Shown here: positions 10,001-64,000 of the stretch, piece after piece | How positions within the stretch are numbered: position 1 is the first letter of the stretch | Layout: every line of letters starts with the position of its first letter | From: Mobula hypostoma | Lineage: Eukaryota | Length of the DNA stretch: 64,000 nucleotides | Assembly: GCF_963921235.1 (NCBI RefSeq) | Contig: NC_086110.1 | Span: 13,082,001 to 13,146,000 of the forward strand | Direction: 5' to 3' | Translations under genes and position numbers: made by a program | Notes under the pieces: generated by a model | Database searches by the model: none | Told to the model about the DNA's origin: nothing | What the model saw: the letters and a program-made list of their open reading frames with translations, nothing else

Positions 10001-13000
10001 GGGTTGCACGAACTAGTTGGGTCGTATGGCTCTGTTACAGTGGCGTGCAAATTTTGGGCACCCCGGTCAAATTTTCTGTTACTGTGAATAGTTAAGTGAG
10101 TAGAAGTGGAACTGATTTCCAAAAGTCATAAAGTTAAAGATGAAACATTCTTTTCAACATTTTAAGCAAAATTAGTGCATTTTTGGTCCAATTTTAGAGT
10201 GAAAGAAATGGAAAGGTGCACCATGCAAATGTTTACGGACCCCAAGAGATTTGAGCTCTCAGGTAACTTTTACCAAGGTCTCAGACCTGAATTAGCATGT
10301 TAGGGCTATGGCTTCTTCACAGTTATCGTTAGGAAAGACCAGGTGATGCAAATTTTAAAGCTTTATTAATATCCTGATTGCTGAAACCTTGTCCCAACAA
10401 TCAGAAGACATGAGCTCCTCTAAGCGGCTGCCTAGCACTCTGAAAATTAAAATAAATGATGCGCACAAAGCAGGAGAAAGCCAGCAAAGCGTTTTCCGGT
10501 AGCCGTTTCCTCAGTTCGTAATGTAATTAAGAAATGGCAGTTAACAGGAACGGTGGAGGTCAAGTTGAGGTCTGGAAGACCAAGAAAACTTTCCTAGAGA
10601 ACTGCTCGTCGGATTGCAAGAAAGGCAAATCAAAACCCCCGTTTGACTGTAAAAGACCTTCAGGAAGAATTAGCAGACTCTGGAGTGGTGGTGCACTGTT
10701 CTACCGTGCAGCGACACCTGCACAAATATGACCTTCATGGAAGAGTCATCGGAAGAAAACCTTTCCTGCATCCTCATCACAAAATTCAGCGTCAGAAGTT
10801 TGCAGAGGAACATCTAAACAAGCCTGATGCATTTTGCAAACAGGTCCTGTGGACTAATGAAGTTAAAATAGAACTTTTTGGCCGCAATGAACAAAAGTAT
10901 GTTTGGAGAAGAAAGTGTGCAGAATTTCATGAAATAAAAACACCTCTCCAACTGTTAAGCACGGGGGTGGATCGATCATTATGCTTTGGGCTTGTGTTGC
11001 AGCCAGTGGCACGAGGAGCAGTTCACTGTTAGAGGGAAGAATGAATTCAATTAAATACCAGCAAATTCTGGAAGCAAACATCACACCGTCTGTAAAAAAA
11101 CTGAAGGTGAAAAGAGGATGGATAATGATCCTAAACACACCTCAAAATCCACAATGGACTACCTTAAGAGGCGCAAGCTGAAGGTTTTGCCATGGCCCAC
11201 ACAGTCCCCCGACCTGAATATCATCGAAAATATGTGGATAGACCGGAAAAGAGCAATGCATGCAAGACGGCCCAGAAATCTCACAGAACTAGAAGCCTTT
11301 TGCAAGGAAGAATGGGCGAAAATTCCTCAAACAAGAATTGAAAGGCTCTTAGCTGGCTACAGAAAGCATTTACTAGCTGTGATACTTGCCAAAGGGGGTG
11401 TTACTATGTACTGACCATGCAGGATGCCCAAAATTTTGCTTCAGGCCCTGTTCCTTTTTTTGTTAATTTGAAATTGTAAAAGAAGGAAATAAAAAAAGTA
11501 ATCCTGCTTAAAATATTAAAGAAATGTGTGGACCTTTAACTTTATGCCTTTTGGAAATCAGGTCATCATTTACTCGATCACAGTAACAGACATTTTGTAC
11601 AGTAGTGCCCAAACACGTGCATGCCACTGTATATCTTCAAAGCAAATTCATATATTATTCATGGCAATCTCTCTGCTTTACCTGAGAATAGATAATGCAT
11701 TCTTCTTGTTGTCGATCTTTGCGAAATCCTTTATTCTCCCTTATATTTAGTGAAACATGGGGAGTGGTGTGATCAACCGCAGCTTGGTCAGCCTGTTGGA
11801 AAAACACACTTAATACTGATAACTGGTACAAGGTCAGTGATCATGAACTATTTGGTTTGGAATATCTAATAATAGAAAAGGATTTTATAAATGTTTGGAA
11901 TAATATTTTGTCCGCGTATTATGATATTGTCCGTATATCATACCGGAGGTGGGATGCCAAACCCATTTCAGGCTGGAAGTCACTAGGTTTACTTTAGATT
12001 TCCAAACAGCCACTTAAAACCATCCTTTCAATCGGATCGGTTTCTCAGGTCTGGCCATCATTTTTGTTTTCATCTCTTCTGTCATATCCCTTACGCGCTT
12101 CTAAGTTTTGTGGACGGGCTTTATCCGATGCGTTTCTCTTAGCACCCATTCAAATTACTATAATTATTGGCATGACGCGATTTCGTCCCCACGGTGCATT
12201 TAGAGGCTGTGACTCTTGAAACTCGCATTATCTAGGTTAAGGATATTGGAACAAGTGACAAGACCTGTTGTACGGTTCCAGCCTGGCTTAACTGAGGTAG
12301 CGAATACGGGAGGGGCATCTTGCCAGCTGTTGAGCTGATTGTTGTTGCTGGTGTATCAATTAAATTTCAATCGAAATAAGTAGAGCTGTTGGACATGCCC
12401 GTTACAGTAAATGGTTAAAATAGCATTCGTTCTGGCTGAAATAATGGCAGAGCATTCCAGAGCAATAAAGCGACGGTAAAAAAAATCTTAAACGTTATAG
12501 CTTCAGCTTATATATTACTCCCAGAAGCGGTTCTACATTTCGGGAAGTGCTACAAATGCTGATAGAAGTTTCAACGGAGTTCTACTATAATGAAGCCAGT
12601 GGGATATGACAACCTTGCTTTGGTGATGCGAAAAGTTGTTGCAGCAAATATCGTTAGGTAAAAGTAAATATATGCGCTACAATTGGGAAGGTAATTAATG
12701 AACACAAAAAAGTTGTTTCCCGTGTAGACAGATGGGTATATAACCGATAAAGGTTTAATATATGCTATCAGGAGGATCCAGGTGGGACACATTTATTAAC
12801 ATTGAACTGCTGGAACTTTGAAGTGAAACAGACAAATAAGACACACAGTAGATCAGGAAACACGAGAGGAAAGAGAAATAATCAACGGTTACGTTGCTTT
12901 CCGGGGAGAGGTGTTCAATCTGAAACGACAACATTTTCTCTTTCCCAAAATGTCGTTGGAGATTTTTAATTTCTGGATTAAATCCAAAATGGGAGATGAC

Positions 13001-16000
13001 AATACATTTAAATGTAGCAGGCATTTCTTTCAAAATTGAGGATGATAATCCTTCAGCGTAGCCTCGTGGAGTAGAAGGCGCCTGGTGGAATTTCCTTAAC
13101 ATGTGGGTATCATTGTGCACCAGATACTACACGTTTTATTGGAAGCATATTCGATTCCATTGCAGGTCATGCACTGTTCTGTGGATCTTTGTTGGGAATC
13201 GGTGTTAAAAACTCCATATGACTTTCCAAAGCAAGATTTCGTTGCATTTTCAATTTTGCTTGCTGTGCGTTCAGATCAGATGTAACATATATTGCGAAAT
13301 GCGTGTACTGTATTTTTCCATTGTGCACGACACAGCGATTCTCGTAAGCCGACATTTGACATCTAAAACATCTCAGTCTTAAACTTGTATTTAATTATTC
13401 GTCAAACGAAGCGTGATTAACAGCATAACTTCCATTAGTATACACTACCGTTCATCTTAATGCAACCGGTTATGAACTGATGTAGAATCCTGAAAGACGA
13501 TAGATTCAGATTCAATAGGAATATTCAAATCTATCTTGGATAAAACTGCAAAATAAAGAGTTGTCAGGTAGTTTTATTGTTCTCTACTGCGTTTCAAATG
13601 TTAGAACCAAGTAAATCTTCGGCGGGAGGACAAGATGGCGGCATGCAGTGCGTGCGCAGCTCTCTGGTGAAAAATGATATCGTATCTGTCAAATAGGGGC
13701 CATGGACAATTCTGATTTGATGGAGAATGGACGTGAAAGCACAGAGGAACATTCGCTGCTGTCGTTACTGTGTGGTCGTGAATCTTTCGGAGGGTAGGCC
13801 TCAAAATCCCCGACCTTGCCTGCTTTTGGCGACCGAGAAGGTGGTCGAAACGTTCGGGCAGATGTGGCGCTCAGTACTTGGTATCGTAGAGCTGATCAGA
13901 GCTCGAAGGTTTCGGATGACTCAGAGTCGGATTGTGGTCGGCATGGCAGGGAGAGTTTTTCTTCGTTCTCCCGTCTACGTGACATGTGGGACATTTGAGA
14001 AACCTTGAACTTTACTGTGCTCACGGACTTCATCAAGTTATGGTATTGTTGCACTGTTTGTAACTATATGCTATAATTATGTGGTTTTCTCAGTTTTTTC
14101 AGTCTTGGTTTGTCCTGTGTTTTGTAATATCACACCGGAGGAAATAATGTATCATTTCTTAATGCATGCATTACTAAATGACAATAAAAGAGGACTACTT
14201 GTCTTCATAATCATAAATTTGTCATATTTAAGGTACGTTTGATGTTAGGCCGGTAATTTTGACATCGGGAGTGGGTAAGTTATTAGAGGGAGTACTAAGA
14301 GACAGAATCTACAAGCATTTGGATAGACGGGGGCATATTTGGGAGAGTCAACATGGCTTTGTGCGTGGTAGGTCATGTTTGACCAATCTATTGGAGTTTT
14401 TCGAGGAGTTTACCAGGAAAGTGGATGAAGCGAAGGCAGTGGATGTTGTCTAAAGCCTCTGACAGGGTCCCGCATGGGAGGTTAGTTCGGAAAATTCAGT
14501 CGCTAAGTATACATGGAGAGGTGGTAAATTGGATTAGATATTGGCTCAATGGCAGAAGCCAAAGAGCAGTAGTAGAAAATTGCTTCTCAGAGTGGAGACC
14601 TGTGACTCGTGGTGCGCCACAGGGATCAGTGCTGGGTCCATTGTTATTTGTCATCTGTATCAATTATCTGGATGATAATGTGGTAAATTGGATTAGCAAA
14701 TTTACTGATTATACAAAGATTTGAGATGTACTAGACAGTGAGGAAGGTTTTCGGAGCCTGCAGAGGGACTTGGACCAGCCGGAAAAATGGGCTGAAAAAT
14801 GGCAGATAGAGTTTAATACAGACAAGTGTGAGGTATTGCACTTTGGAAGGACAAACCAAGGTAGAACATACAGGGTTAATGGTAAGGCACTGAGGCGTGC
14901 AGTAGAACAGAGGGATCTTGGAATACAGATACAAAATTCCCTAAAAGTGGCGTCACAGGTAGATAGGGTCGTAAAGAGAGCTTTTGGTACATTGGCCTTT
15001 ATTAATCAAAGTATTGAGTATAAGAGCTGGAATGCTATGATGAGGTTGTATAAGGCACTGGTAAGGCTGAATTTGGAGTATTGTGTTCAGTTTTGGTTAC
15101 CAAATTACAGGAAGGATATTAATAAGGTTGAAAGAGTGCAGAAAAGGTTTACAAGGATGTTGCCGGGACTTGAGAAACTGAGTTACAGACAAAGGTTGAA
15201 TAGATTAGGACTTTATTACCGAGAGCGTAGAAGAATGAGGGGAGATTTGATAGAGGTATATAAAATTATGATGGGTATAGATAGAGTGAATGCAAGCAGG
15301 CTTTTCCCACTGAGGCTAGGGGAGAAAAAAAAAACAGAGGACATGTGTCAAGGTTGAAGGGGGAAAAGTTTAAAGGGGGGCTTCTTCACACAGAGAGTGG
15401 TGGGAGTGTGGAATGAGCTGCCAGACGAGGTAGTAAATGCGGGTTATTTTTGAACATTTAAGAATAAATTGGACAGATACATGGGTGGGAGGTGTATGGA
15501 GGGATGTTGTCCGTGCGCAGGTCAGTGGGACTAGGCAGAAAATAATTCGGCAGAGCCAAGAAGGGCCAAAGGCCTGTTTCTGTGCTGTAGTTTTTCTATG
15601 GTTTCTGAGGTTTTCTATATCTCTGCTATACCTATATGCCGATCTCAAAGAAGTCAAGCCACTTCACTTACCAGCTCTTCACTCTGACATCTGTCCAAAG
15701 AACTTGTGTTAATCCCTTAAGAAAAATAAAAGAAATTATTTACATTGTAAAAGTTGGACATTATTCGTTTGATACAAATAGAATTCATCGCGTAAGAGGA
15801 ACTGCTGAAGGTATGGATCTTTCAGAAAACGTTTTGTGGTATTAGTTGTCTTAATACAGTGCATCAACATCATGGCACTATGCTCAAGAGTCTACGACAT
15901 TTAAAGAAGTCGTAAAGTGATAATAGTATATGAGTGGCTGTACTACATCTAAATACTGTCGTTAAAATGAAAATTAAAATCAATGAGACATGCATGAGCT

Positions 16001-19000
16001 CGTCAATGTTCTTTAAACAGTGACAGTAAACATAGACCTACGCCAAACTTCTTACGCTTCAAAGTATAGACCTGCCATTGTACCCAAAACGACATTTGAA
16101 GTACTTCAAAGGATATAACGGCATTTATGAACAAGATACAGCATATATATACAGCGAGTGGATTGGTGGAATTATTGTATATTAAGATCCAGCTTGTGTT
16201 GTGCCTGATGATTCTCAATGTAATCAGGTTCGACCATGTCAATCCCTGTCTAATCATGCTGTAATGACATTTATTCTTTTTGACGTGAAGTATCTTTCAC
16301 ACATCTATTTTGCACGAATAGAGGTGATATTTCTCAGCGATCAGGTTTCTTACCGTGCAATCTCTTTAACTTGACATTCACCAAAACAATTATTAGAGCT
16401 AAAATTGCCGATCCGCCCAGTGCACATGCCAGAATGAATTTAGTATCAGCGCCTTGTGGATCAACAGGGGGAAAACAAGAAACTGTGAAGCACTTATACA
16501 TCTAAAAAAATGCACTCATGAGAATCAATAATGCAAAATATCTCATGGGCTCCTTTCAAATCTCACTGCACAATATCGGAAAATATGTCATAAGACAGGA
16601 AATGCAAATGCCCACCTTTGTTATATTTCGATGAGATATAGAGTTTACGTTTTGCTTTCCACAATTTTGGCAAATGTTCAGATACTTACAAATACTGCAC
16701 AAATTGAATTTCTTAATTCGTCCTACACGATTTAAACTAACGGAATAACACAAGTTTTTGAACACCTTTCACGTTCAATACTCACTATCAATTACTAAGC
16801 TTTAAAGTTAGTCAGTCTTCCGTGTTTGGGTAGCTGTTCAGTTACTGTTCTTAACAAGGTCACATTGACCCCACCACAATGACTTGTAAGCGCTTTCATC
16901 TTACATTGAGCACAAAAGATTCTGAACATGCTGAAATTCAGAATAACACATAAAATCCTGGAAGAACTCAGCCGATCAGGCAGATCTAATATGTCGACGT
17001 TTACCGCCGAGATCCAACATCATGACTTCATCAAAACACCATCTTACCTTGGATGTAGCTGAAACTGGCAGACAACGTGAGGGAGCCATGCGACACCAGG
17101 CAGGTGTAAATATCTTTTCCCCAAGTAGACTGCGTAATTTCCAATAAACTAAGTACCTCATACAAGCCGTCCACGTTCCGGTTTGTCACATTTTCTATTC
17201 CAGTGTGAATTTGCTTGTTATTTCTTTGCCAAATGATTTCTAATTTCTCCGGGTAGAAGGCAGCCGTTTTACAAAGGAGCTTTCGAGGAGACGAAAACCC
17301 TCCAACAGGAACAATTTCCACTGGAGTTGGAGGAGCTTGAATCAAAAGATAGTTATATTGAGTATTTTCGATCCATTTCAGTACAGATAATTTCACTTAT
17401 CTCCCCTCCAACTAGCATGACGCTCAACTATCAAATCAGTTACCCGCCAGTATTAACCAGTATTTAATAAATTCTTCCAATTTCACGTTCTGCTTATTGT
17501 TGCTCAACCATACACACACACACTCCGATGCAAAATACGCCATGACGCCTCACCATTGCTTTATAAAGTCTGAATATTACATCCTTACTTTTATATTCTG
17601 GTCCTCTTGAAATGAATGCGATCATCGGATTTGCCTTCCTGGCCACAGACCCAACCTGCAAATTAACCTGTATGGAATACTGCACACGGACTCCCAAGTC
17701 CCTTTGCACCTGAATGTTATTTTTTTTGTGTTTTCTCTCCAGTTGGAAAATATTCAAAACTTTCACACCCTCCACCAAACTGCATGCCCGCACACCTCTC
17801 GATACTGTATTCCATCTGCCATTTCTTTGCCTGTCCTCCTAATCTGTCTCAGTCTTTCTGTAGTCTCTCTATTTCCTAAAACTACCTGCCCGTCCACCTC
17901 TCTTCAAATCGTCTGCAAGCTTTGCAACAAAGCCATCAATTCCACCATCCATATCATTGACTAATCACATTAAACGAATCAGTCACTGCACAGACCCCTG
18001 TGGAACACAGTTCGCACGGGAAGCCAACCAGAAAATGCTCCCTTTATTTCCATTCTTTGTCACTTACCAACCAGCCACTGCTTTATCCACCCTAGTATCT
18101 TTCTTGTTATACTTTGGGCTCGTAGCTTGTTTAACAGCCTTGTGTGTGGTACCTTGTCAAAGGCTTTCTGTAAATCCAAGTACACAGCAATCGATTCTGC
18201 TTATCTTTATCTATCCTGCTTTTTATTCCTTCAAATAATTCAATCAGATTTGTCTGGCGAGAGTTTCCTTTGAGGATATCATGCTGACAATGGCGTGTTT
18301 TGTTATGTGTCTCCAAGTAATCTAATACCTGATCCTTAATGATGGATTCCAACATCTTGACAACCAGTGAGGTCAGACTGACTGGTCTATAGTTTCCCTT
18401 TTCTGCCTCTCTGCTTTCTTGAAGAGTGGAGTGACATTTGTAATTTTCCAGTCTTCCAGAACCATTCCAGAATCGTAATTCTTGAAAGACCTTTACTAAT
18501 GCCTCCACAATCTATCAGCAACTTTTATCAGAATCATGGTATGTACATCATCTGGTCTAGGTGAATTACCTACTTTCAGAACTTTCAGTTTCCCAAGAAC
18601 TTGCACTCCAATTATGTCTCTAGTTTTGCTGTTGTTCAAGATAGACTCTCGGAATAAACCGGAATAATATAGACTAGTTGGTATTACAGTGAAGTGGGTA
18701 ATTTATTGGAAGATATTCGAAAGAATAGGATAGATAAATATTGAGATAGACTGGGCTTGTTTGGGAATAAGCAACATTATTTTGTGCAATGTAGGCTCTG
18801 TCTAACCAATCTTAATGAACTTTTCGAGCGGGTTACCATGGACCTTGATGAAGGATAACAGTGTATATGGTCAATATGGATTTTAGCAAGAGCTTTGGAA
18901 AAGTTCTGCATGGGGGTGGTGGGCTGATCAAGTACGTTCGCTTGGAATTCAGGATGAAGGAGTAAGTTGTGTCTAACTTTGGCTTCGCGGGAGAAGCCAG

Positions 19001-21085
19001 TGTATGGTAGTAGATGTTTGTTCTTTGAACGAAGGCCTTTTACTGGTGGTGTGCCGCATGGCGATCAAAGCTTGCAGCGGGTTATGGACCAGGTCTAAAA
19101 ATGCGTTGAAAATGGCAGATAGGATTTAATGAAGGTAATTGTAAGCTGTTGTACTTTGAGAAGACAAACCATTCTCCGATACACATCGTCAACGAGACTG
19201 GGATTGACGAATGCGGTAAAAAATGATCTTGGAATACAGATAGATAATTCATTGGAAATGGAGAAAAAGGCAGTGCTTTCGTAAAGATAACCTTTGTCAT
19301 ATTGGACTTCACATATCAGAGTATTGAGTGTAAAAGTTGGAATGTTATGCTGAAGTTGCATTAGACGGCAGTGAGAACAAATCTGGTGTATTGTTCACAG
19401 TTCTGGTTAATTATCTGCTGGAAAGTTATAAATATGATTGAATGAGTACAAAACAACTTACAAGATGTGGCATGAATTTGAGGACATGGATTATGAGGAA
19501 AGGTTTAACAGGTAAGGATTTTTTGAATGATTCGTAAGAGAAATAGCGAACATTTGATCGAAGTATACAAAATTATGAGGGTGTATACAAGCCTGCATCA
19601 TCCACTGAGGTTGGGTGAGAATGTAATTGGAATTCATAGGTTCAGAGTGAAATGAAAAGTATTAAAGGCGAACCTGGTGGGAAACGTCTTTACTCGGCCG
19701 GTGATGCTATTGTGGAGTGAGCTGCCAGAGGAGGTGTTTGCGATCGACTCTCTACCCGTTACAGTACTATCCAATCCTATCAAAATTCGCCTTAACCCTG
19801 AGAGGTCTATATTTCTCACAATTTATATGGTGAAAGAAGTATAGATTTTGCTAACCCTGCATAACAAAAGTTGGAATGACATTTTGCAGTGCATGTGATA
19901 GATGTTGGAATTAACTCATTTGGTGCTGGGTATTATTCCTGTCTACTTGTTGATGGGGAAATGGAGCATTGTGCTGCTGCATACAGACCCTTTGATCGAG
20001 ATTACTCTATTTAAGTATTAATATTCTGCGTCCTCTGTGCTGAGCAATCGAGTTATCCAACTCCAGCCATTCACATTAATATTAATATTATTTCAGCCTC
20101 TTGCTTGCAACACAATCCTAACCTTGCTGGAAAAGTAAAGTAATTCGTTGTATTCAAAGTACCTTCGTGATAATGAGGGTGAAGTCCTAAGGTATCACTA
20201 ACCTTGGAAATTCGGTTTATTTGGGAGATAGCTGATGAGCAGCGCTCGACGAACAGCGGTGGGAAAGAGCCGAGGAAGTACGATATGATAAACAGAATCA
20301 ACTCCGTTATCCGCCTAATAGTTGCTACATGAAATGTGATTAAGTCTTCAGTTCTTTATAATTCTGAATTGACAATCCCTGGACTGGGGTATATTTTAAC
20401 GCGGGGAACAAATGTATTCTCGCCGCTTGTTTAGTCAAGTAGAAACATTTATTTTCATCCTCATCACTAAGTTTGATGTAAAATGCACAGAGCCGAAAAT
20501 CTCCAAACAACCACACTTACCGAACACAGTGAGGCTGGTGCCACAGCTACTCACGAAAAATTGCTCCTGAAACTTTACTTCACAGTAATATAGTCCAGAG
20601 TCGCTGAATTTGACATTTCGGAGTACAAGCGTTCCTCTTCCCCTTTCTACTGTAAATTGTCTTCTGCTGTCCCCTTCTAAAAATGCCTTCTCGCCTTGCC
20701 TCCGCCAACGAATGTCAACAGTATCTTGTGATAGTGGAAATTTGCAGAACATCGTGACATTCGCACCACCCGGGACGTTCAGGTCCCGAGGGAATTGAGA
20801 TACTTCGTTCGCCGTTACTTTGACGACTGCCGGAAAAGTAAGCAAGTGTATTAATAACAGTTAAACACAGTGAATTAATAAAAAACGGATGACGTAAGTC
20901 ACTGGATATCTAAGAGCGAAAGACGGCCGAATAGATGAAAAAATATAACCGAGTATGCTGCAGGCACCCAGAGTTAAATATTATTAAATAGAATATTCAA
21001 TTCGGAAACGGCGTTTATAAATCAGCATACTTAGCCAAGTAATAGCCAGAAGTGTCATGTACGAAACCGTAAACTTCTCCGCCAT
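6968..21085 (-). CDS. Spliced gene for a non-rearranging V(J)-C1-TM-ITIM Ig-superfamily inhibitory receptor (SIRP-like tail, CD79a-like V); 7 coding exons, 344 aa
   Basis: Exons 21031-21085, 20521-20826, 17048-17335, 16354-16452, 15672-15715, 11682-11792 and 6968-7099, all with GT-AG boundaries. Intron phases 1,1,1,1,0,0 chain into one open frame: MAEKFTVSYMTLLAITWLIVKVTA-NEVSQ...YYC...SCGTSLTVF-APPTP...FYP...YTCLVSH...-TM-...LTYAAL...LYADVNTSKKL*. Confidence 0.88.
7817..8340 (-). mobile_element. Penelope-like element 3' tail / pseudo-LTR fragment
   Basis: HLGGLQPESMNIDLSNF (end of the GIY-YIG region) and terminal sequence shared with 34748-35290 and 44052-44230. Confidence 0.6.
8410..9780 (+). 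mobile_element. CR1 LINE, RT 3' half plus tail (degenerate)
   Basis: HGFLKGKSCLCNL, DFQKAF, KFADETKIGG and RPHLEYCLQFW-like motifs; tail ggcctacttctgctcctat. Confidence 0.85.
9805..10035 (+). mobile_element. tRNA-derived V-SINE-like element
   Basis: A/B-box-like head followed by V-domain-like core ttcccatgaccg...ttttctgggcgctcaggttacctcccacgttccaaaaacgtac. Confidence 0.55.
10038..11629 (+). mobile_element. Tc1-family DNA transposon with IR/DR termini, inactive
   Basis: TA TSD at 10036-37 and 11630-31. About 210-bp imperfect TIRs starting CAGTGGC, with an inner repeated gcaaaa.ttttgggca motif. Frameshifted transposase: GRPRK-like HTH region, VLWTNEVK (first catalytic D is N), DNDPKH, SPDLNIIE. 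Confidence 0.93.
11682..11792 (-). CDS. Exon 6, cytoplasmic exon (ADQAAVDHTTPHVSLNIRENKGFRKDRQQEECIIYSQ)
   Basis: Acceptor tgtgtttttccaacag|, donor CAG|gtaaag, 111 nt, phase 0-0, open frame with a Tyr motif at its 3' end. Confidence 0.75.
13621..14200 (+). repeat. Unclassified ~600-bp dispersed repeat, copy 1
   Basis: Starts caagatggcggc and ends ...taaatgacaataaaagag; clearly homologous to 49257-49910. Confidence 0.7.
14255..15605 (+). mobile_element. CR1 LINE 3' part (RT plus tail), intronic and antisense to the receptor gene
   Basis: SQHGFVRGRSCLTNLLEFFEE, PQGSVLGPLLF, KFTDYTKI, RLNLEYCVQFW; tail ctgtgctgtagtttttctatgg. Confidence 0.9.
15672..15715 (-). CDS. Exon 5, juxtamembrane cytoplasmic exon (GINTSSLDRCQSEEL)
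   Basis: Acceptor tttcttttatttttcttaag|, donor CTG|gtaagt, 44 nt, phase 1 to 0, which matches both flanking exons. Confidence 0.82.
16354..16452 (-). CDS. Exon 4, transmembrane exon (GADTKFILACALGGSAILALIIVLVNVKLKRLH)
   Basis: Polypyrimidine acceptor ttcttgttttccccctgttgatccacaag|, donor CACG|gtaaga, 99 nt, phase 1-1. About 22 uncharged hydrophobic residues followed by basic KLKR. Not in the ORF track; found by reading the minus strand. Confidence 0.9.
17048..17335 (-). CDS. Exon 3, C1-set Ig constant domain
   Basis: Acceptor ttttgattcaag|, donor CAAG|gtaaga, 288 nt, phase 1-1. C1 hallmarks LLCKTAAFYP, IIW, NVDGLYEVLSLL, W..DIYTCLVSHGSL. Confidence 0.95.
17570..18540 (-). mobile_element. 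CR1 LINE RT fragments in the V-C1 intron
   Basis: GNYRPVSLTSLVVKMLESIIKD, QRDLGVRVQYSIQVNLQV. Confidence 0.8.
18690..19760 (+). mobile_element. Highly degenerate CR1 RT fragment
   Basis: Remnant motifs ctaaccaatcttaatgaacttttcgag, atggattttagcaagagctttg and ctgtggagtgagctgccagaggagg. Confidence 0.6.
20521..20826 (-). CDS. Exon 2, short V-type Ig domain with J-like G strand
   Basis: Acceptor ttttccggcag|, donor G|gtaagt, 306 nt, phase 1-1. B-strand Cys (TMFC), C-strand Trp (IRWRR), DSGLYYC motif, C-terminal SCGTSLTV, N-glycan sequon NVT. Confidence 0.95.
21031..21085 (-). CDS. Exon 1, leader peptide MAEKFTVSYMTLLAITWL
   Basis: ATG at 21085 in aagATGG context; 55 nt ending phase 1 at A|gtatgc. 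Joined to the V exon it gives hydrophobic TLLAITWLIVKVTA with a plausible cleavage site after VTA. Confidence 0.8.
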
Positions 21086-44427: not shown

Positions 44428-47400
44428 CATAGAAACATAGAAACATAGAAAATATGTGCAGGAGTAGACCATTCGGCCCCTCGAGCCTGCACCGCTATTC
44501 ATACGATCATGGCTGATCATCCAACTCAGAACCCTGTGCCAGCCTTCCCCCCATTGCCCCTGATCCCTTTAGCCACAAGGGCCATATCGAACTCCCTCTT
44601 AAATATAGCCAATGAACTAGCCTGAACTGTTTCCTGTGGCAAAGAATTCCACAGATTCACCACTCTCTGTGTGAAGAAGTGTTTCCTAATCTCGGTCCTA
44701 AAAGGCTTCCCCTTTATCCTCAAACTGTGACCCCTCGTTCTGGACCTCCCCAACATCGGGAACAATCTTCCTGCATCTAGACTATCCAATCCCTTTAGGA
44801 TTTTATATGTTTCAATAAGATCCCCCCTCAATCTTCTAAATCCCAACAAGTATAAGCCTAGTCGATCCAGTCTTTCCAGGTAAGTCATTAATATATATTG
44901 TAAACAACTGGGGTCCCAGCACTGAGCCTTGCGGTACCCCACTAGTGACTGCCTGCCATTCTGAAAAGGTCCTGTTTATTCCCACACTTTGCTTCCTCTC
45001 TGCCAACCAATTCTCTATCCACATCAATACCATACCCCCAAAACCCTGTGCTTTAAGTTTGCACACTAATCTCCTGTATGGGACCTTGTCAAAAGCCATT
45101 GGAAAATCCAAATATACCACATCCACTGGTTCTCCCCTATCCACTCTACTAGTTATATCCTCAAAATATTCTATGAGATTCGACAGACATGATTTTCCTT
45201 TCACAAATCCATGCTGACTTTGTCCGATGATTTCACCGCTTTCCAAATTTGCTGTTATCACATCTTTGATAACTGACTCTAGCATTTTCCCCACCACCGA
45301 CGTTAGGCTAACCGGCCTATAATTGCCTGGTTTATCTCTCCCTCCTTTTTTAAAAAGCGGAGTTACATTAGCCACCCTCCAATCCTCAGAAACTAATCCA
45401 GAATCTAAAGAGTTTTGAAAAATCATAACTAATGCATCCACTATTTCTTGGGCTACTTCCTTGGGCCACTCTGGGATGCAGACCATCTGGCCCTAGAGAT
45501 TTATCTGCCTTTAATCCCTTCAATTTACCAAACACCACTTCGCTACTAACATGTATTTCCCTCAGTTCCTCCATCTCACAAGACCCTCTGTCCCCTACTA
45601 TTTCCGGAAGATTATTTATGTTCTCCTTAGTGAAGACATAACCAAAGCAGTTATTCAATTGGTCTGCCATGTCCCTGCTCCCCATAATCAATTCACCTGT
45701 GTCTGTCTGTAGGGGACCTACATTTGTCTTAACCAATCTTTTTCTTTTCACATATCTATAAAAGCTTTTACAGTCAGTTTTTATGCTCCCTGCCAGTTTT
45801 CTCTCGTAATCTTTTTTTCCCCTTCGTAATTAAGCCCTTTGTCCTCCTCTACTGGACTCTGAATTTCTCCCAGTCCTCAGGTGAGTCACTTTCTCTGGTT
45901 AATTTGTATGCTTCTTCTTTGGAATTGATACTATCCCTAATTTCCCTTGTCAGCCACGGGTGTACTACCTTCCTTGATTTATTCTTTTGCCAAACTGGGA
46001 TGAACAATTGTTGTAGTTCATCCATGCGATCTTTAAATTCTTGCCATTGCAAATCCACCGTCAACGCTTTAAGTGTCATTTGCCAGTCTATCTTAGCTAA
46101 TTCACGTCTCATATCTTCAAATTTACCCTTCTTTAAGTTCAGAACCTTTGTTTCTGAATTAACTATGTCACTCTGCATCTTAATGAATAGTTCCTCCATA
46201 TTATGGTCACTGTTAACCAAGGGGCCTCTCACGACAAGATTGCTAATTAACCCTTCCTCATTGCTCAATACCCAGTCTAGAACAGCCTGCTCTCTAGTTG
46301 GTTCCTCGACATGTTGGTTCAAAAATTGTCCCGCATACATTCCAAGAAATCTTCTTCCTCAGCACCCTTACCAATTTGGTTCACCCAATCTATATGTAGA
46401 TTGAAGTCACCCATTATAACTGCTGTTCCTTTATTGCACACATTTCTAATTTCCTGTTTAATACCATCCCCAACCTCACTACTACTGTTAGGTCGCCTGT
46501 GACCTTAAAGCACACGGTATTGGGGGTAAGGTATTGGTGTGGGTGGAGAATTGGTTAACAGACAGGAAGCAAAGAGTGGGAATAAACGGGACCTTTTCAG
46601 AATGGCAGGCGGTGACTAGTGGGGTACCGCAAGGCTCAGTGCTGGGACCCCAGTTGTTTACAATATATATTAATGACTTGGATGAGGGAATTAAATGCAG
46701 CATCTCCAAGTTTGCGGATGACACGAAGCTGGGTGGCAGTGTTAGCAGTGAGGAGGATGCTAAGAGGGTGCAGAGTGACTTGGATAGGTTGGGTGAGTGG
46801 GCAAATTCATGGCAGATGCAATTTAATGTGGATAAATGTGAAGTTATCCACTTTGGTGGCAAAAATAGGAAAACAGATTATTATCTGAATGGTGGCCGAT
46901 TAGGAAAAGGGGAGGTGCAACGAGACCTGGGTATCATTATACACCAGTCATTGAAAGTGGGCATGCAGGTACAGCAGGTGGTGAAAAAGGCGAATGATAT
47001 GCTGGCATTTATAGCGAGAGGATTCGAGTACAGGAGCAGGGACGTACTACTGCAGTTGTACAAGGCCTTGGTGAGACCACACCTGGAGTATTGTGTGCAT
47101 TTGTGATCCCCTAATCTGAGGAAAGACAACTTTGCCATAGAGGGAGTACAAAGAAGGTTCACCAGATTGATTCCTGGGATGGCGGGACTTTCATATGAAG
47201 AAAGACTGGATGAACTGGGCTTGTACTCGTTGGAATTTAGAAGATTGAGGGGGGATCTGATTGAAACGTATAAGATCCTAAAGGGATTGGACAGGCTAGA
47301 TTCAGGAAGATTGTTCCCGATGTCGGGGAAGTCCAGAACGAGGGGTCACAGTTTCAGGATAGAGGGGAAGCCTTTTAGGACGGAGATTAGGAAAAATTTC

Positions 47401-48260
47401 TTCACACAGAGAGTGGTGAAACTGTGGAATTCTCTGCCACAGGAAAATGTTGAGGCCAGTTCATTGGCTATATTTAAGGGGGAGTTAGATATGGCCCTTG
47501 TGGCTACGGGGATCAGGGGGTATGGAGGAAAGGCTGGGGCGGGGTTCTGAGTTGGATGATCAGCCATGATCATAATAAATGGCGGTGCAGGCTCGAAAGG
47601 CCGAATGGCCTACTCTTGCACCTATTTTCTATGTTTCTATGTTTCTATGTACACAACTCCCACCAGCGTTTTCTGCGCCTTAGTGTTGTGCATATCGATT
47701 CCACATCCTCCTGACTAATGTCCTTCCTTTCTATTGCGTTAATCTCCTCCCTAACCAGCAATGCTACCCCACTTCCTTTTCTTTCATGTCTATCCCTCCT
47801 GAATATTGAATATCCCTGAATGCTGAGCTCCCATCCCTCGTCACCTTGGAGCCATATCTCTGTGATCCCAATTATATCATATTCATTAATGAAACTCTGC
47901 ACTTCTAATTCATCCACCTTGTTACGAATGCTGCATGCATTGACACACAAAGCCTTCAGGCTCGCTTTTACAACACTCTTAGCCCTTTTACAATTATGGT
48001 GGAAAGTGGCCCTTTTTGATATTTGCCCTGGATTTGCCGGCCTGCCACTTTTACATTTCAACTTACTACTTTTTGCTTCTACCCCCATTTTACACTCCTC
48101 TGTCTCTTTGTACTTGTTCCCATCCCACTGTTGTGAACTAACTTCCTCTTTCCTCGTCTCTTTAATTTGATTCCCACCCCCCAACCGTTCTAGTTTAAAG
48201 TCACCTCAGTAGCCCTCGTAAATCTCCCGGCCAGGATATTGGTCCACCTCGGATTCAAGT
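44428..48260 (-). mobile_element. CR1 LINE (same subfamily as 35291-38826) with internal deletions, interrupted at 46500/47651
   Basis: (catagaaa)n tail at 44428. RT and EN match the 35-38 kb copy. Sequence ...ttaggtcgcctgt at 46500 continues as acacaactccc at 47651. Confidence 0.88.
46501..47650 (+). mobile_element. 5'-truncated CR1 copy nested in inverted orientation within a same-family CR1
   Basis: ORF 46534-47106 RT C-terminal half; (tttctatg)n tail ends at 47650. Confidence 0.9.
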
Positions 48261-52310: not shown

Positions 52311-53509
52311 TGTCAGTCTGGTTAAGACCAGAAATTGTCTCTGGAAGCGGACTCAAATGCAAGACACAAACACTGCAGTACTAGGAACAGGACTAGGTTT
52401 ATCAAGAAAGCAAGGGAAGAAACAAAGCTGGACATTGACACAGGCCCTGAACGAGACTGGGATTCAGGGCCTGGGCTAGGACTCGAGCAGGGGAACCGGC
52501 CATGGAACTAGGAACAAGGAACCTGGACAGGGACACGGAACCTGGGTCTTGACTCGCTCTCGGACACCCGGACCAAGGCGAGGCCTAGACGTGGCTACAG
52601 GAGTGGACGTGGTAAAACCCTGCACAGGACGAGGCACATGGACAGGACGAGAACACAAAGCCTTGACTTGGACAGGACGAGGTTCTTGGACTAGGCTTGG
52701 ACTAGACGAGAGACTCCTGGACAGGACGTGCGATCTCCAGCACAGGACGTGGGATCTCCAGCACAGGACGAGGGATCTCCAGCACCGTGCTGGGCGAGGT
52801 ACTGGAACTAGATGAAGACACGAACCTCAGATTTGTACAGGGCTGGAACACGGCGCCTGGACTTGGTCTTGAAACACAGGAACACGGAGCCTTAGACGTG
52901 GACTGGACGCTCAGATCCTTGGACGTCGACTGGACGAGGTAGTCCAAGGCAGGACGAGGCTGTTGGACTCGTTTTGGCTCGGGTCTTTGATTCGGCTAGC
53001 TTTGGCTCTTGGGTACGGGGCCGGGACCACTCCTTGGGGACAGGACCTAGGACCGGGGACACTTCTTTGACACGGACACTAAACACAAGGACACAAAGAG
53101 ACAGTTCCAAACTCAACGATAGATAGTTCCTTATGTTGGCGTGGCGAGGCTCAGCTCTCGCTCCGGCGGTTGAACTAGACGGTGATACAGGCGAGGACGC
53201 AGGCGAGGTTGCAGGCAAGGTAGCAGGCGAAGGTAACAGACGAAGGTTACAGGCGAAAGTTAGTGCCGAAGTACCTGTTGAGCTAAACTGCTAAAGTAGC
53301 TGCCAGGGATTCAGATGAGGAAGGGAACGGATCAGTCCAGCAGGGGATCCTTGGTTTGAGAGGTAATTATGTGCCAGCCCACAATGGGAATCAGGTGCCT
53401 GAATTAAGGCACCCAAGAGAGCAAGGGAGAAAAACAGGAAAATCTGGAACAAGGATCGATGGACCGGACCATGAATCAGAATTTTCACTTCACGGACCAG
53501 ACCATGACA
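52311..53509 (-). mobile_element. Solo-LTR-like element related to 3086-4316
   Basis: Minus-strand start TGTCATGGTCTGGTCCGTGA, end ...ACTGACA; internal 3 x 21-bp atctccagcacaggacg.ggg at about 52733-52795. Confidence 0.62.
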
Positions 53510-56044: not shown

Positions 56045-57040
56045 AGTACTGGGTCCATTGTTATTTGTCATCTATATCAATGATCTGAATGATAATGTGG
56101 TAAATTGGATCAGCAAGTTTGCTGATGATACAAAAATTGGAGGTGTAGTAGACAGTGAGGAAGGTTTTCAGAGCCTGCAGAGGGACTTGGACCAGCTGGA
56201 AAAATGGGCTGAAAAATGACAGATGGAGTTTAATACTGACAAGTGTGAGGTATTGCACGTTGGAAGGAGAAACCAAGGTAGAACATACAGGGTTAATGGT
56301 AAGGCACTGAGGAGTGCAGTGGAACAGAGGCATCTGGGAATACAGATACAAAATTCTCTAAAAGTGTCGTCACAGGTAGATAGGGTCGTAAAGAGAGCTT
56401 TTGGTACATTGGCCTTTATTAATCGAAGTATTGAGTATAAGAGCTGGAATGTTATGATGAGGTTGTATAAGGCATTGGTGAGGCCGAATCTGGAGTATTG
56501 TGTTCAGTTTTGGTCACCAAATTACAGGAAGGATATAAATAAGGTTGAAAGAGTGCAGAGAAGGTTGACAAGGATGTTGCCGGGACTTGAGAAACTCAGT
56601 TACAGAGAAAGGTTGAATAGGTTAGGACTTTATTCCCTGGAGCGTAGAAGAATGAGGGGAGATTTGATAGAGGTATATAAAATTATGATGGGTACAGATA
56701 GAGTGAATGCAAGCAGGCTTTTTCCACTGAGGCAAGGGGAGAAAAAAAAACAGAGGACATGGGTTAAGGGTGAGGGGGGGGGGAAGTTTCAAGGGAACAT
56801 GGGGGGGGGCTTCTTCACACAGAGAGTGGTGGGAGTATGGAATGTGCTACCAGACGAGGTGGTAAATGCGGGTTCTTTTTTAACATTTAAGAATAAATTG
56901 GACAGATACATGGATGGAAGGTGTATGGAGGGATATGGTCCGTGTGCAGGTCAGTGGGACTAGGCAGAAAATGGTTCGGCACAGCCAAGAAGGGCCAAAG
57001 GGCCTGTTTCTGTGCTGTAGTTTCTATGGTTCTATGGTTC
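56045..57040 (+). mobile_element. CR1 3' part (RT C-terminus plus tail)
   Basis: ORF 56223-56963; close to the 14255-15605 copy. Confidence 0.9.
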
Positions 57041-58446: not shown

Positions 58447-59502
58447 TGTCAGGTACCCCGTGACGGGGATACAGAACCAGCAGAAATAGAAACCACTTTG
58501 GATTCTCGTATTGTCGTAGACTAATAATATTCATTAGTAACTACACAATACAGGTAATATCAAAGTAAATAAATCACACAGGTTAGCAATGATTATATAT
58601 AAAAGTAAGTGTGAAATATATATGTATGAAAAATAACAAGCTTCCTTAAGTCTAGGGGTAAAAAGATACAGCCTTACGATGTTGATTAAAGTTCAGTTCA
58701 GTTCGTGGTATTTAGNNNNNNNNNNNNNNNNNNNNNNNNNNNNNNNNNNNNNNNNNNNNNNNNNNNNNNNNNNNNNNNNNNNNNNNNNNNNNNNNNNNNN
58801 NNNNNNNNNNNNNNNNNNNNNNNNNNNNNNNNNNNNNNNNNNNNNNNNNNNNNNNNNNNNNNNNNNATGCCGTCGATCTTCTCGTCGTCCTTCGAAATCC
58901 TTTACAAGTCTTCGACTGTGACTTTAACCAGGGGGACCCGTCTTCTGCGGTGGAGCTATCACCCAGGCGAGGGTGGACACATAGACAACTCCCACCTGCC
59001 AACCCCTTCTTCGGCGGTGGAATAGCAATTTGGATCGATCGGCATGATCGATCCTCCAAAACCCCCTTTCTCTGCGGGCACAACAATGCCCATTCAGTGT
59101 CCAGATGATGTTTCTGAGGTCTGTATCATCTGACCTCTCATTTATTTCACCAGGCTGAGCATCACCTGTCATTCAATGAGTCCCTCTTTCCTTTGTCTGT
59201 AAAGGAGTGCACAAGCAGACAACAAGTCCTTGAAGAAATATCAACAATCTGCCTTTCGTCGCCATAGCACCCTTCGAGCTGCTCTGTGTTGTCTCCAACT
59301 CCAAACTCAGTAGAAATCCAAAGTTACTTCCAATGCCTTAAAGTGACAGTCCAACCGTTATTCTTTGTCTCTCTCTCTCTCTTTTTCAAAAGCAACACAT
59401 CGGTAGTAAATAACTCTGTCTCTCCCTCCTTTCGAAACAAACCATCTATAATAAATGTCTCTCTCCAAACAGTTTATAGGGGCTCTCCTGGATCCCCTCA
59501 CA
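58447..59502 (-). mobile_element. 3' LTR of the Gmr1-like element
   Basis: Polypurine tract GAGGAAGGGGAG immediately before TGTGA at 59502; TGACA end at 58447. An N gap lies inside, so continuity is unproven. Confidence 0.7.
58716..58866. other. Assembly gap (151 N)
   Basis: Direct reading. Confidence 0.99.
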
Positions 59503-60554: not shown

Positions 60555-63500
60555 AATCTTCTATTCTTATCCTTCATCTTAGTTAGAAAAATCAACGGAT
60601 TATAACCCATCTAAACCAGAAGTGGTCGCTGAGCAGCAGAAAGGTTTTGAGGTCGCTGATCATAGGCCTCAAAATATTGTCAAGCCAGAATAAGTGCTAG
60701 TAATTCCTTTTGAATCGTTGAATATTTTTTCTGGTGTACATTAAAGTTCTTTGAGACATAAGCTACTGGGTGTTCAATGTCATTCACTCCCTTCTGTAAC
60801 AGTTCTGCCCCTGCAGCTTCGTCACTAACACCTGTTGTTATAGAAACTGGCTTTGAAAAATCAGGTTCTTTGAACACAGGATGATAACACAGGATGGTGT
60901 CCAGACGTTCAAAATGCTTCCTGGCAAATGTCACTCCATTCAAACCTTTCACTCTTCCCTAGGAGCTTTGTTAAGGGGAGAGCGATGTCAGCAAAGTTCT
61001 TACATATTTTTTTATAATACCCAACCATCCCTAAAAACCTTCTCAAAACTTTCTTGCTCGTTGGAACAGGAACTTCAGGAATTGCTTGAACCTTGGCCTG
61101 CACAGGAGCCAGCTGGCCTTGGCCCACCACATACCCCAGGTATGTGACTGTGGCATGGCCAAATTCACTTTTAACAAGGTTCACCGTAAGAATGGTCTTA
61201 GAAAGTCTGTCAAACAGTTTCTCTGCCGCTGCAATATGTCCATCCCATGTGTTACTCCAGACCACTAGGTCATTAATATAAGCCTCTGTGTTTTCTAACA
61301 CTTTAATCACCGAATTGATCATTCTCTGAAATGTCCCTGGTGCATTTTTCATCCCGAAGGGCAACACATTGTATTCATACAGCCCTGACGGTGTAACAAA
61401 CGCTGAGTTCTCTCTGGCTCTGTCAGTCAATGGAACACACCAGTATCCCTTCAGCAGATCAATCTTCGTGAGGTACTTAGCCTTTCCCACTTTATCAACA
61501 CAGTCATCCACTCTGGGGATAGGATAAGCATCCATCTTGGTTATGGCATTAATTTTCCGGTAGTCAGTACAGATTCTCATGCTACCATCCCGTTTAGACA
61601 CAAGGATGCATGGTGTCGCCCAGTCTGAGGTAGCTGGCCAAAAAATTGCGGTTGCTAGCATGTACCCGATCTCTTTTTCAACTTCTTTATTTTTCTCGAA
61701 GTTCATTCTGTAAGGATGCTGTTTAATGGGTTCAGCTGAATTAAGAATGACATCATGCACTACCCTAGTGCATCGTTTTGGTGTGTCTGGAAATAAATCT
61801 TTGTGCTTCCGAATTAGCTCCTGCAATTGCTCTGTTTGTGCTGGCCCCAAATGACAAACCTTATCAGTAAGGTCCTTTAAGATAAGAGAATTTGTAAGTC
61901 TCGTGGACACAGTACTCAGTTTAGTGAAATATTTTTTTTTCCTCATTATCAAATTCCTCAGCCCCCTTTGTTTTCGTGGTCATACCTACTGGCACCGCCT
62001 CAGAATGATGATACGGGTTCAACATATTAATGTGAACCAGCTGCGTGGCCTTCCTCTTATCAGGAGTTTCAATAACATAATTCAAAGAATCAATTTTCTT
62101 CACTATGTGGTATGGCCCATGGAATTTTGCTTGGAGGAGACTGGTCACAAGAGAGAACAGCACCAGTACTTTGTTTCCAACTTCAAACACTTGGTCCCTC
62201 GCTCCCGTATCAAACCACTGTTTCATTTTAATTTGGGAGTGCTGCAGATTCTACCTGGCAAGGTCGCAGGCCTTGTTAAGCCTTTCTCAGAATTTTAAAA
62301 CACACACATCTGGGTTAGACCATTGCTCCCTAAACAGGGTCAAAGGTCCTTTGGGCCTATGGCCAAAAATGAGTTCGAACGGGCTGAACCCCAGGGACTC
62401 TTGAATGGTGTCGGTCACAGCAAAAAGTAGTAAGTGTATCCCCTCATCCCAATCCTTATCATTCTCATGGCAGTAGGTCTTAATCATAGTTTTTAAAGTG
62501 GAATGAAACCTCTCCAGAGCCCCTTGAGACGCGGGGTGGTAGGCAAATGACACAATCTGTTGAGCACCCAGCTCAGACACTACTTGCTGGAATATTTTTG
62601 AAGTGAAGTTGCTGCCCTGGTCAGATTGAATTTATTTGGGTAACCCTACCAGCGCGAAATAATTGCTGAGTGCTATTACCACAGTCTTGGCCTGGATGCT
62701 TCTGGGAGGCACAGCTTCCGGGAATCTAAAGGCATCACACATTATTGTTAACAAATACTGATGACCAGCTGCAGTCTTTGGCAAAGGGCCTACACAATCC
62801 ACTATGACCCTGGAAAAAGGTTCACCAAAAGCAGGGATTGGGCTAAGTGGTGCTTTTGGAATGGCCTGGTTAGGTTTTCCCACTGCCTTACACATATGAC
62901 ATCCTCTGCAGTAATTGACAATATCTCTCCTCATGTTAGGCCAATAAAACTCCCTCAGGATCCTGTGCACAGTCTTTTTTATTCCAAAATCTCCCCCTAA
63001 AGGCAACTTATGGGCCAGGTTTAAAATTTCAACCCTATAAACCTTTGGAACCACCACCTGGTGCACAATAGCCCAATCCTCACTCGCAGGCACAGTGGCT
63101 GGTCTCCACTTCCTCATTAACATCCCCTCCTTAATTAATACCCCACTGTTTCTTTCTGAATCTCCTCCTCAGGGAGAGCTGTCTCTTTTAAAGCCACAAC
63201 TTCTGGATCTTTATTCTGCTCCTCTATAAGCTCCTTCCTTGACAAGGACAGGTCTTTCCTCTCCTCCTTGCTCTCCTCAGCCTTACTACCCCCTAAATCC
63301 TGTTGATATAAGGACGGTAGGAAAGTCTCAGATAAATCAATATTAGCAGCAGCCTTTCTGGACATTGTTCGTGTCACTGCACATGCGGGATACACATCAG
63401 CATCTTTGGGCGGGTCCTCAGCAGCAGCAGGCTTGCTTGTCAGCTGAATTGCTGGGTAAACTTCCCCACCTGCAAGGTCATTACCGAGTAAGACATCAAC

Positions 63501-64000
63501 ATGGTCTATCGGTATCTCAGATCGGACCCCTATTATGACTGGTTTCGACACCAAGTCACATTTCAAGATTATCTTATGCAAGGGCACGTCCTCTGCTCCA
63601 TTTCCAATGCCATTAATGATGTTTACTTCTCGAGTGTCTGTCTCCGCACCAAATTCCAAAACATTCTTTAATATCAGTGACTGGAAAGCTCCATTATCTC
63701 TCCATATTTTAACTGGGACTGGGTTTGACCCCTCCTTCACAGACTCAAACCCTTCTAAAATAAACCTATCGAGTCCTTCCTGAACTCGATTCGACGCCTT
63801 TTTCCTCAGCGGTATTTTAGCCATCTGAACACAGCCAGTTGGGGTTTTCTCTTTCTCCTTTCCTTTCCCCCTTTTCGTAGCAAAACAATTCGACGCCACA
63901 TGGCCAGGTTTTCCACAAGAATAACACTTAAAACTGGGAAATTTTTCCCCCAACTGTTTCCCTTCCTCCTTACTTTTAACACTAATCCCTGGTTTACTTT

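Follow-up and report, generated by a model that had tools for sequence, protein, structure and literature searches.

The 64-kb window examined here is the whole stretch of DNA that was analysed, positions 13,082,001 to 13,146,000 of contig NC_086110.1 in assembly GCF_963921235.1 of the devil ray Mobula hypostoma. It carries an intact gene for a type-I membrane receptor composed of a leader, a V(J) domain, a C1 domain, an uncharged transmembrane (TM) segment and a cytoplasmic tail with an immunoreceptor tyrosine-based inhibitory motif (ITIM). The V exon had been singled out in a sequence-only reading for its likeness to CD79a, a signalling subunit of the B-cell receptor (BCR), and in particular for an additional cysteine in the G strand, Cys94 of the V domain, which is the main subject of this analysis. 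The gene corresponds to a 344-residue NCBI model of M. hypostoma (P0157), automatically named 'natural cytotoxicity triggering receptor 3 ligand 1-like', which was retrieved by a full-library search and a word-index search and whose peptides were then mapped back onto the window. P0157 holds the V and C1 translations of the window exactly, and the mapping yielded seven coding exons on the minus strand, with all splice sites sound and the reading frame intact (Table 1). The best PDB match of exon 3 is UrIg2, followed by the constant domains of IgM, IgE and IgA. In the cytoplasmic tail, LTYAAL of exon 7 conforms to the ITIM pattern [ILVS]xYxx[ILV]. TPHVSL of exon 6, by comparison, stands where paralogues carry the ITIM TAYASL or TEYAPL and has lost the Tyr, and ALYADV of exon 7 corresponds to TLYADV in paralogues, with loss of the Thr of the immunoreceptor tyrosine-based switch motif (ITSM). 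Both changes are common to the M. hypostoma gene and its M. birostris orthologue, so that one canonical ITIM remains. The Pfam matches, the P0157 model and the tail motifs thus bear out the earlier proposal that the V domain is joined to a C1 domain and to an ITIM tail rather than to one with an immunoreceptor tyrosine-based activation motif (ITAM). No other Ig exons were found in the 64-kb window, which therefore contains no partner chain.

Table 1. Coding exons of the receptor gene and the codon of Cys94, in window positions.
Feature	Positions	Strand	Content	Length, phase and basis
Exon 1	21085-21031	minus	start codon and split leader, MAEKFTVSYMTLLAITWL plus first base of a split codon	P0157 peptide mapping, donor GTATGC
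Exon 2	20826-20521	minus	single-exon V(J) domain	306 nt, phase 1-1; Pfam, AF2 model, contig breaks
Cys94 codon TGT	20545-20543	minus	x position of the J-motif GxG, G-strand bulge	
Exon 3	17335-17048	minus	C1-set domain	288 nt, phase 1-1; Pfam C1-set 1e-13
Exon 4	16452-16354	minus	short stalk and TM (GADTKFILACALGG...), Cys four residues into the TM	acceptor caag/GC as in P0157 and P0006
Exon 5	15715-15672	minus	small cytoplasmic exon (INTSSLDRCQSEEL)	P0157 mapping
Exon 6	11792-11682	minus	cytoplasmic, TPHVSL, ends IIYSQ	P0157 mapping, tail comparison
Exon 7	7099-6968	minus	cytoplasmic, ITIM LTYAAL, then ALYADV, stop TGA	P0157 mapping, tail comparison

Two acceptor candidates were discarded in the course of the mapping. 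The initial candidate for exon 6 was dropped once the small exon 5 had been placed by means of P0157, and for exon 4 an upstream cacag (16452-16480, 28 nucleotides upstream) was rejected because P0157 and P0006, the M. birostris orthologue, both use caag/GC. If used, this cacag acceptor would add VSCFPPVDPQ in frame, with a membrane-proximal Cys. Besides, the P0006 entry is isoform X2 of the M. birostris orthologue, in which a predicted splice runs from V to TM and skips C1; such a C1-less layout (a single V, a TM and a Tyr motif), predicted only for M. birostris, is nearer to those of CD79, CD8 and CD28.

Splicing of V to C1 could be followed in sequencing runs presumed to be RNA. Contigs from these runs pass from position 17336 directly into a V exon, carrying 38 bases that encode LGTGGGTKFTVF, a paralogue G strand, and further contigs break exactly at 20826 and 17048; these breaks at exon borders indicate that V-to-C1 splicing is real for the family. 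The sequence-only reading had described the V domain as being followed by APPTP. This junction is real, since P0157 holds both exon translations and the paralogue contigs skip the intron, but its two sides are not contiguous in the DNA and meet only once the V exon has been spliced to the C1 exon, at 17335 and 3.2 kb downstream.

Exon 2 is bordered on the minus strand by the acceptor cag before 20826 and the donor gtaagt after 20521, and the 101 full codons of 20824-20522 encode a V domain of 101 residues. Pfam assigns the exon to V-set (8e-13), and the AlphaFold2 (AF2) model of the domain has a mean predicted local distance difference test score (pLDDT) of 88.6. The exon borders, the translation and the Pfam assignment together confirm the V domain that had been placed at 20521-20826. 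The canonical Ig triad consists of Cys27, Trp40 and Cys81 with a Cys-Cys spacing of 54, and the third cysteine, Cys94, lies within SSCGTSLTV, 13 residues beyond the F-strand Cys81, so that both distances given in the earlier description agree with the translation. With V and a J-like G strand in one germline exon and Cys-Trp-Cys present, the exon has the make-up of a non-rearranging VJ-type domain. DSSP assigned residues 93-95 of the model to a non-strand segment between the strands 90-92 and 96-100, which places Cys94 in a bulge, and the GxG of antigen receptors likewise sits in the G-strand bulge. The xGTxLxV part of the Cys94 segment is the J motif common to the whole receptor family, and therefore only Cys94 and the preceding Ser stand out: compared with the family pattern GxG[ST]xLxV, the first G is replaced by Ser and x is Cys. 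The ectodomain contains five cysteines, namely two canonical pairs and Cys94, and this odd count leaves Cys94 without an intrachain partner.

The position of Cys94 was compared with those of the interchain cysteines of CD79a, CD79b and UrIg2. The 42-residue string of human CD79A that the earlier reading had cited is 100% identical to residues 57-98 of PDB 7wso_A and 89-130 of 7xq8_A, and in the numbering of the latter the Cys of SCGT is residue 119. The stated offset of 13 residues between the F-strand and G-strand cysteines is right for human CD79a; it is 12 in mouse CD79a (RSCGTYLRV). The SCGTxLxV pattern of the devil-ray V domain is identical to that of both human and mouse CD79a. HMMER aligned V residues 62-100 without gaps over 39 residues to 87-125 of 7xq8_A, which sets Cys94 on CD79a Cys119, and the alignment with CD79b ends with its residue 142 at V residue 100, so that Cys94 would fall on CD79b Cys136 if the last six residues are ungapped, as judged from the end points only. 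Cys119 of CD79a and Cys136 of CD79b form the ectodomain interchain disulfide of the BCR (reviewed in PMC10251933); the proposed equivalence between the extra cysteine and the interchain cysteine of CD79a is thus upheld by the HMMER alignment and this review. In addition, HMMER aligned CSCGTTLKV of UrIg2 with SSCGTSLTV, with Cys94 on the second Cys of CSCGT. The crystal structure of nurse-shark UrIg2 contains A112-B112 and A114-B114 disulfides that join the G strands of two V domains, in addition to C1-C1 pairing (PMC12227049). In addition, the titles of PDB 3kg5 and 3kho describe a crystallised homodimer of CD79b on its own. A PDB search with the last 24 V residues returned only a nanobody at E 0.4. 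By these alignments, Cys94 holds the same J-motif x position as CD79a Cys119, CD79b Cys136 (from the end points) and the second G-strand Cys of UrIg2.

We then turned to the relatives of the gene. A profile built from 13 members retrieved 64 proteins, and every one with a named source is from a cartilaginous fish. Rays and skates are represented by Mobula, Hypanus, Hemitrygon, Amblyraja and Leucoraja, with Narcine among the first matches, sharks by Scyliorhinus, Chiloscyllium, Heterodontus, Heptranchias, Carcharodon, Cetorhinus and Mustelus, and chimaeras by Callorhinchus. The gene thus belongs to a multigene family that, among the matches listed, occurs only in cartilaginous fishes. Long tails with ITIMs (e.g., P0025 and P0153) coexist in this family with short tails and an Arg or Asp in the TM (P0159, P0161, P0069 and P0202), and related ectodomains on both kinds of tail are the classic arrangement of inhibitory and activating paired receptors; the ITAM pattern YxxL/I(6-9)YxxL/I was absent from all family tails compared. 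Many ray and shark members have a Cys where the TM starts on its outer side (ILACALGG), and Gly, Tyr or Arg variants also occur there. The automatic names of the members are inconsistent and include SIRP-alpha-like, B7-H6-like, PD-L1-like, Ig-lambda-like, tapasin-related and MHC class II-like, and our search of the literature turned up no paper that describes them. Within this undescribed set of paired receptors of cartilaginous fishes, the gene is an ordinary member that had already been annotated by machine. Other routes to relatives were less informative: a full-library phmmer search with the V domain returned mostly giant multi-Ig proteins ranked by summed score, among which only about a dozen single-stretch relatives were useful, and a Protein Atlas look-up of the V domain gave generic V-set clusters only.

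The family alignments provided the history of Cys94. The G strand generally reads (G)xG[S/G/T/N/A]G[T/S]xLxV, and G93 and G95 are kept in at least 90% of 27 aligned sequences that span the class. Cys occupies the x position in three of about 63 family sequences; the canonical GxG is seen in the roughly 60 others, which range from chimaera to rays. The three are P0157, its M. birostris orthologue P0006, which differs at one of 101 V residues (99% identical) and at seven in the tail and keeps Cys94, and P0158, a M. birostris paralogue that is 87% identical and has RSCST in its G strand. In a maximum-likelihood tree of the V-C1 region of family members, these three sequences form a weakly supported group (83/34) that is nested in a well-supported Mobula-only clade (100/96), the other branch of which reads GTGGGT; this clade lies inside a clade of stingrays and mantas (100/100), which in turn lies inside a ray clade (100/99). 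The transcript of the sister paralogue has the codon GGT where this gene has TGT, one base apart. The restriction of the Cys to a three-sequence subclade within Mobula indicates a recent derived change and not inheritance from an ancestor shared with CD79. Cys94 arose once, recently, by a single base change within this Mobula-only subclade, and its likeness to CD79a thus represents convergence on a generic VJ scaffold rather than shared descent. Odd cysteines at other places occur elsewhere in the family: P0172, P0191, P0200, P0214 and P0134, from bamboo shark and elephant shark, carry one in the final position of the V exon (LTVC, followed by VPPTPL), and P0043, a Logan-derived fragment, reads GNGSGC. 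An unpaired Cys near the V-C1 hinge was thus gained more than once.

Sequence and structure searches gave a diffuse picture of the neighbours of the V domain. In a single-sequence PDB search, CD79b was the best single-domain full-length match with 28 bits, followed by the alpha chain of the T-cell receptor (TCR) with 26 bits, and CD79a matched with 24.6 bits (E 2e-4) over V residues 60-99 only. A 22-sequence family profile run against PDB gave 42 bits for TCR V-alpha and 40 bits for CD79b, and CD79a was not among the best 60 profile matches. Foldseek searches of PDB with the V model placed the variable domain of the shark new antigen receptor (VNAR), TCR V-alpha and CD79b within a factor of two of one another in E-value, with CD79b fourth; TCR V-alpha leads by Z score and by structure-based identity, which is 31-33% compared with 23-25% for CD79b. 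Among Swiss-Prot models, human and mouse CD79B came first, closely followed by CD8-beta, Ig kappa, TCR V-alpha and CD7, and CD79a was absent from the structural matches listed. Beyond the B-C region, the family consensus and human CD79a both read WWR. The nearest neighbours, TCR V-alpha, VNAR, CD79b, CD8-beta and Ig kappa, are thus tied, and the traits they share with the devil-ray V are common to VJ-type domains in which the C'-C'' region is short. CD79, NITR, SIRP, CD8, NKp30 and PRARP have been listed as VJ-type (PMC11599192). Profile and structure comparison with CD79a and CD79b had been put forward earlier as a check on the proposed relationship. CD79b was recovered among the tied neighbours, but CD79a was weak or absent among the matches listed, and since Cys is present in three of about 63 family sequences and CD79b is one of several tied neighbours, the proposed shared ancestry of the V domain with CD79a is not supported.

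For the V-C1 unit, UrIg2 was the best match in a PDB sequence search (1e-18), followed by Ig heavy chains, and SIRP-alpha (2wng) appeared at 2e-13, behind UrIg2 and many Ig chains, by way of its C1 domain. The two-domain model (pLDDT 87.8) matched Fab light chains and TCR-beta in Foldseek. The unit is therefore built like an antigen-receptor chain, its best matches being UrIg2 and Ig heavy, Ig light and TCR chains.

Comparison with known systems places the receptor between several of them. CD79a and CD79b share with the devil-ray V a VJ-type Ig domain, a short C'-C'' region and a Cys at the x of GxG. They differ, however, in that each has a single Ig domain, carries an ITAM in its tail and depends on pairing with membrane Ig, whereas the devil-ray receptor has V plus C1 and an ITIM tail; moreover, the devil-ray Cys, being recent and confined to one subclade, is unlike the ancestral trait that common descent with CD79 would need. 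UrIg2 (PDB 9dmx) and UrIg are non-rearranging elasmobranch genes that resemble the devil-ray receptor in having a single-exon VJ followed by a C1-set domain, but UrIg2 has 9-11 C domains and UrIg three, compared with one C1 in the devil-ray receptor (PMC12227049). In the UrIg2 homodimer, G-strand cysteines form V-V interchain disulfides, whereas the devil-ray family normally does without such cysteines. UrIg2 and UrIg are not known to have an ITIM tail and do not make up a large paired family. The alignment with UrIg2 covers only the end of V together with C1 and scores 30 bits for that stretch. The SIRP family, after which NCBI names many of the devil-ray receptor's relatives, likewise combines a VJ-type V with C1-set domains, an ITIM tail, and paired inhibitory and short, charged-TM forms, but it is built as V-C1-C1, whereas the devil-ray receptor has a single C1. 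No SIRP V domain was among the sequence or structural matches listed for the V domain, and SIRP is not the nearest relative. The V domains of Ig light chains, TCR chains and shark IgNAR rearrange, whereas the devil-ray V(J) is one germline exon without a sign of rearrangement and has its own ITIM; membership of the gene in rearranging loci is not suggested.

Taken together, these observations lead us to consider it likely that the exon encodes the V domain of an ITIM receptor in which Cys94 is a recent acquisition that has converged on the CD79 arrangement. We regard it as highly probable that the V domain binds a ligand and that the ITIM would then signal inhibition. The further step, in which Cys94 would form a V-V interchain disulfide and so a covalent homodimer, or a heterodimer with a Cys-bearing paralogue of the P0158 type, is distinctly less certain and falls somewhat on the doubtful side. 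Since bonds at the same position have been solved in CD79a/b and in UrIg2, the latter being the nearer precedent, a covalent dimer is a reasonable mechanism, and by this precedent a Cys94-linked dimer appears plausible. The intact exons and splice sites and the retention of Cys94 in the M. birostris orthologue count in favour of function. A homodimer prediction for the V-C1 ectodomain scored 0.08 against a mark of 0.32, which counts neither for nor against binding. Several observations weigh against the reading we favour. W41R and G93S fall in near-invariant columns, and W69R replaces a Trp that is kept in close relatives; in addition, the first ITIM Tyr and the ITSM Thr are lost in this copy. 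The loss of these conserved residues fits remodelling or relaxed constraint, and could reflect decay rather than a new function. The same-species V-exon contigs of one run are only about 91% alike to this gene, and therefore derive from paralogues and provide no expression evidence for this very copy. The TM-start Cys of ILACALGG, kept in many members, offers an alternative site of covalent pairing. Finally, with CD79b nominally the first structural match in Swiss-Prot, some closer kinship with CD79b may exist.

The most serious alternative, which we judge to be less probable than the favoured reading but by no means negligible, is that Cys94 is neutral or mildly harmful in a diverging and perhaps decaying paralogue, where it would be free, capped or mispairing, and the protein, if working, would be monomeric. 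The five substitutions just named (W41R, W69R, G93S, ITIM1 Tyr to His and ITSM Thr to Ala) all occur in the same copy, as such decay would have it. The reads of the runs presumed to be RNA gave no clean expression signal for this gene copy, showing paralogue transcripts and, in one run, additionally a low and even cover of introns, and the odd cysteines of other members (LTVC, GSGC) suggest sporadic gain. On the other hand, neither the frame nor any splice site is disrupted, Cys94 is still present in the M. birostris orthologue, in which one of 101 V residues has changed against seven in the tail, P0158 keeps it as well, and its position is exactly that of the interchain bonds of CD79 and UrIg2.

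It is improbable, by our estimate, that the covalent link of the family is instead made by the TM-start Cys, as in CD3-zeta, FcR-gamma and DAP12, with Cys94 irrelevant to pairing. This outer-TM Cys is far better conserved than Cys94, being present in many ray and shark members, but it is not universal, and the proposal would leave the retention of an additional ectodomain Cys in two species unexplained. Least probable is a genuine kinship of the V domain with the BCR subunits, CD79a especially, in which the Cys would come from a common ancestor and fusion to C1 and an ITIM would have followed later: the SCGTxLxV identity with Cys94 on Cys119, the rank of CD79b as best single-domain full-length PDB match with the two top Swiss-Prot structural matches, and the WWR consensus speak for it, but it is largely refuted by the distribution of the Cys, which about 60 of 63 members lack, among them those of all sharks, skates and the chimaera, and is further opposed by the short and weak match of CD79a, which is missing from the best 60 profile matches and the structural matches listed, by the higher structure-based identity of TCR V-alpha than of CD79b, and by an unlike architecture with an added C1 and an ITIM in place of an ITAM. 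Of the interpretation given by the sequence-only reading, the positional equivalence of the cysteines and the V-C1-ITIM architecture hold, dimerisation is plausible, and the specific CD79a ancestry is not supported.

Returning to the favoured reading, with its recent and convergent Cys94, we tentatively speculate that the J-motif x position may act as a recurrent covalent pairing switch of non-rearranging VJ domains, used in CD79a/b, in UrIg2 and in the Mobula subclade, where a receptor that was a monomer or non-covalent dimer might recently have become a disulfide-linked dimer; we would not rate this as probable. If Cys94 does bridge chains, the G-strand position would have been taken up independently for covalent V-V pairing three times, in CD79, in UrIg2 and here, and the close GxG paralogues without the Cys would serve as built-in controls, a before-and-after pair for the evolution of V-V pairing geometry. 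The recurrent use of the J-motif x for covalent pairing is one modestly interesting point; the finding says nothing about how CD79 originated. The gene also matters as part of a large, antigen-receptor-shaped VJ-C1 paired-receptor family whose members are labelled inconsistently in databases.

The remainder of the 64-kb window consists of transposon debris. On the minus strand, 60683-63998 contains open reading frames (ORFs) resembling those of a long terminal repeat (LTR) retrotransposon, with a gag-like product carrying a CCHC zinc knuckle, RVT_1, an integrase zinc-binding domain and a portion of the integrase core. The ORFs of this element are spread over several reading frames and continue past the end of the window. 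A frame-broken remnant of a Tc1/mariner-type transposase (HTH_Tnp_Tc3_2 and DDE_3) lies on the plus strand at 10598-11411, within the long intron between receptor exons 5 and 6. Reverse-transcriptase fragments of the long interspersed nuclear element (LINE) type are found on the plus strand at 46492-47547 (RVT_1 at 46492-47103), 14232-15354 and 56220-56960, and similar copies recur. Over the repeats of the V-C1 intron at 17524-18700 and 19489-19619, reads of all runs were stacked thousands deep. A run of 151 N bases at 58716-58866 represents an assembly gap or a mask. At 52479-53290, several frames of either strand stay open and show short peptide-like repeats (RSHVLCW...), so that this segment is probably tandemly repeated or of low complexity.

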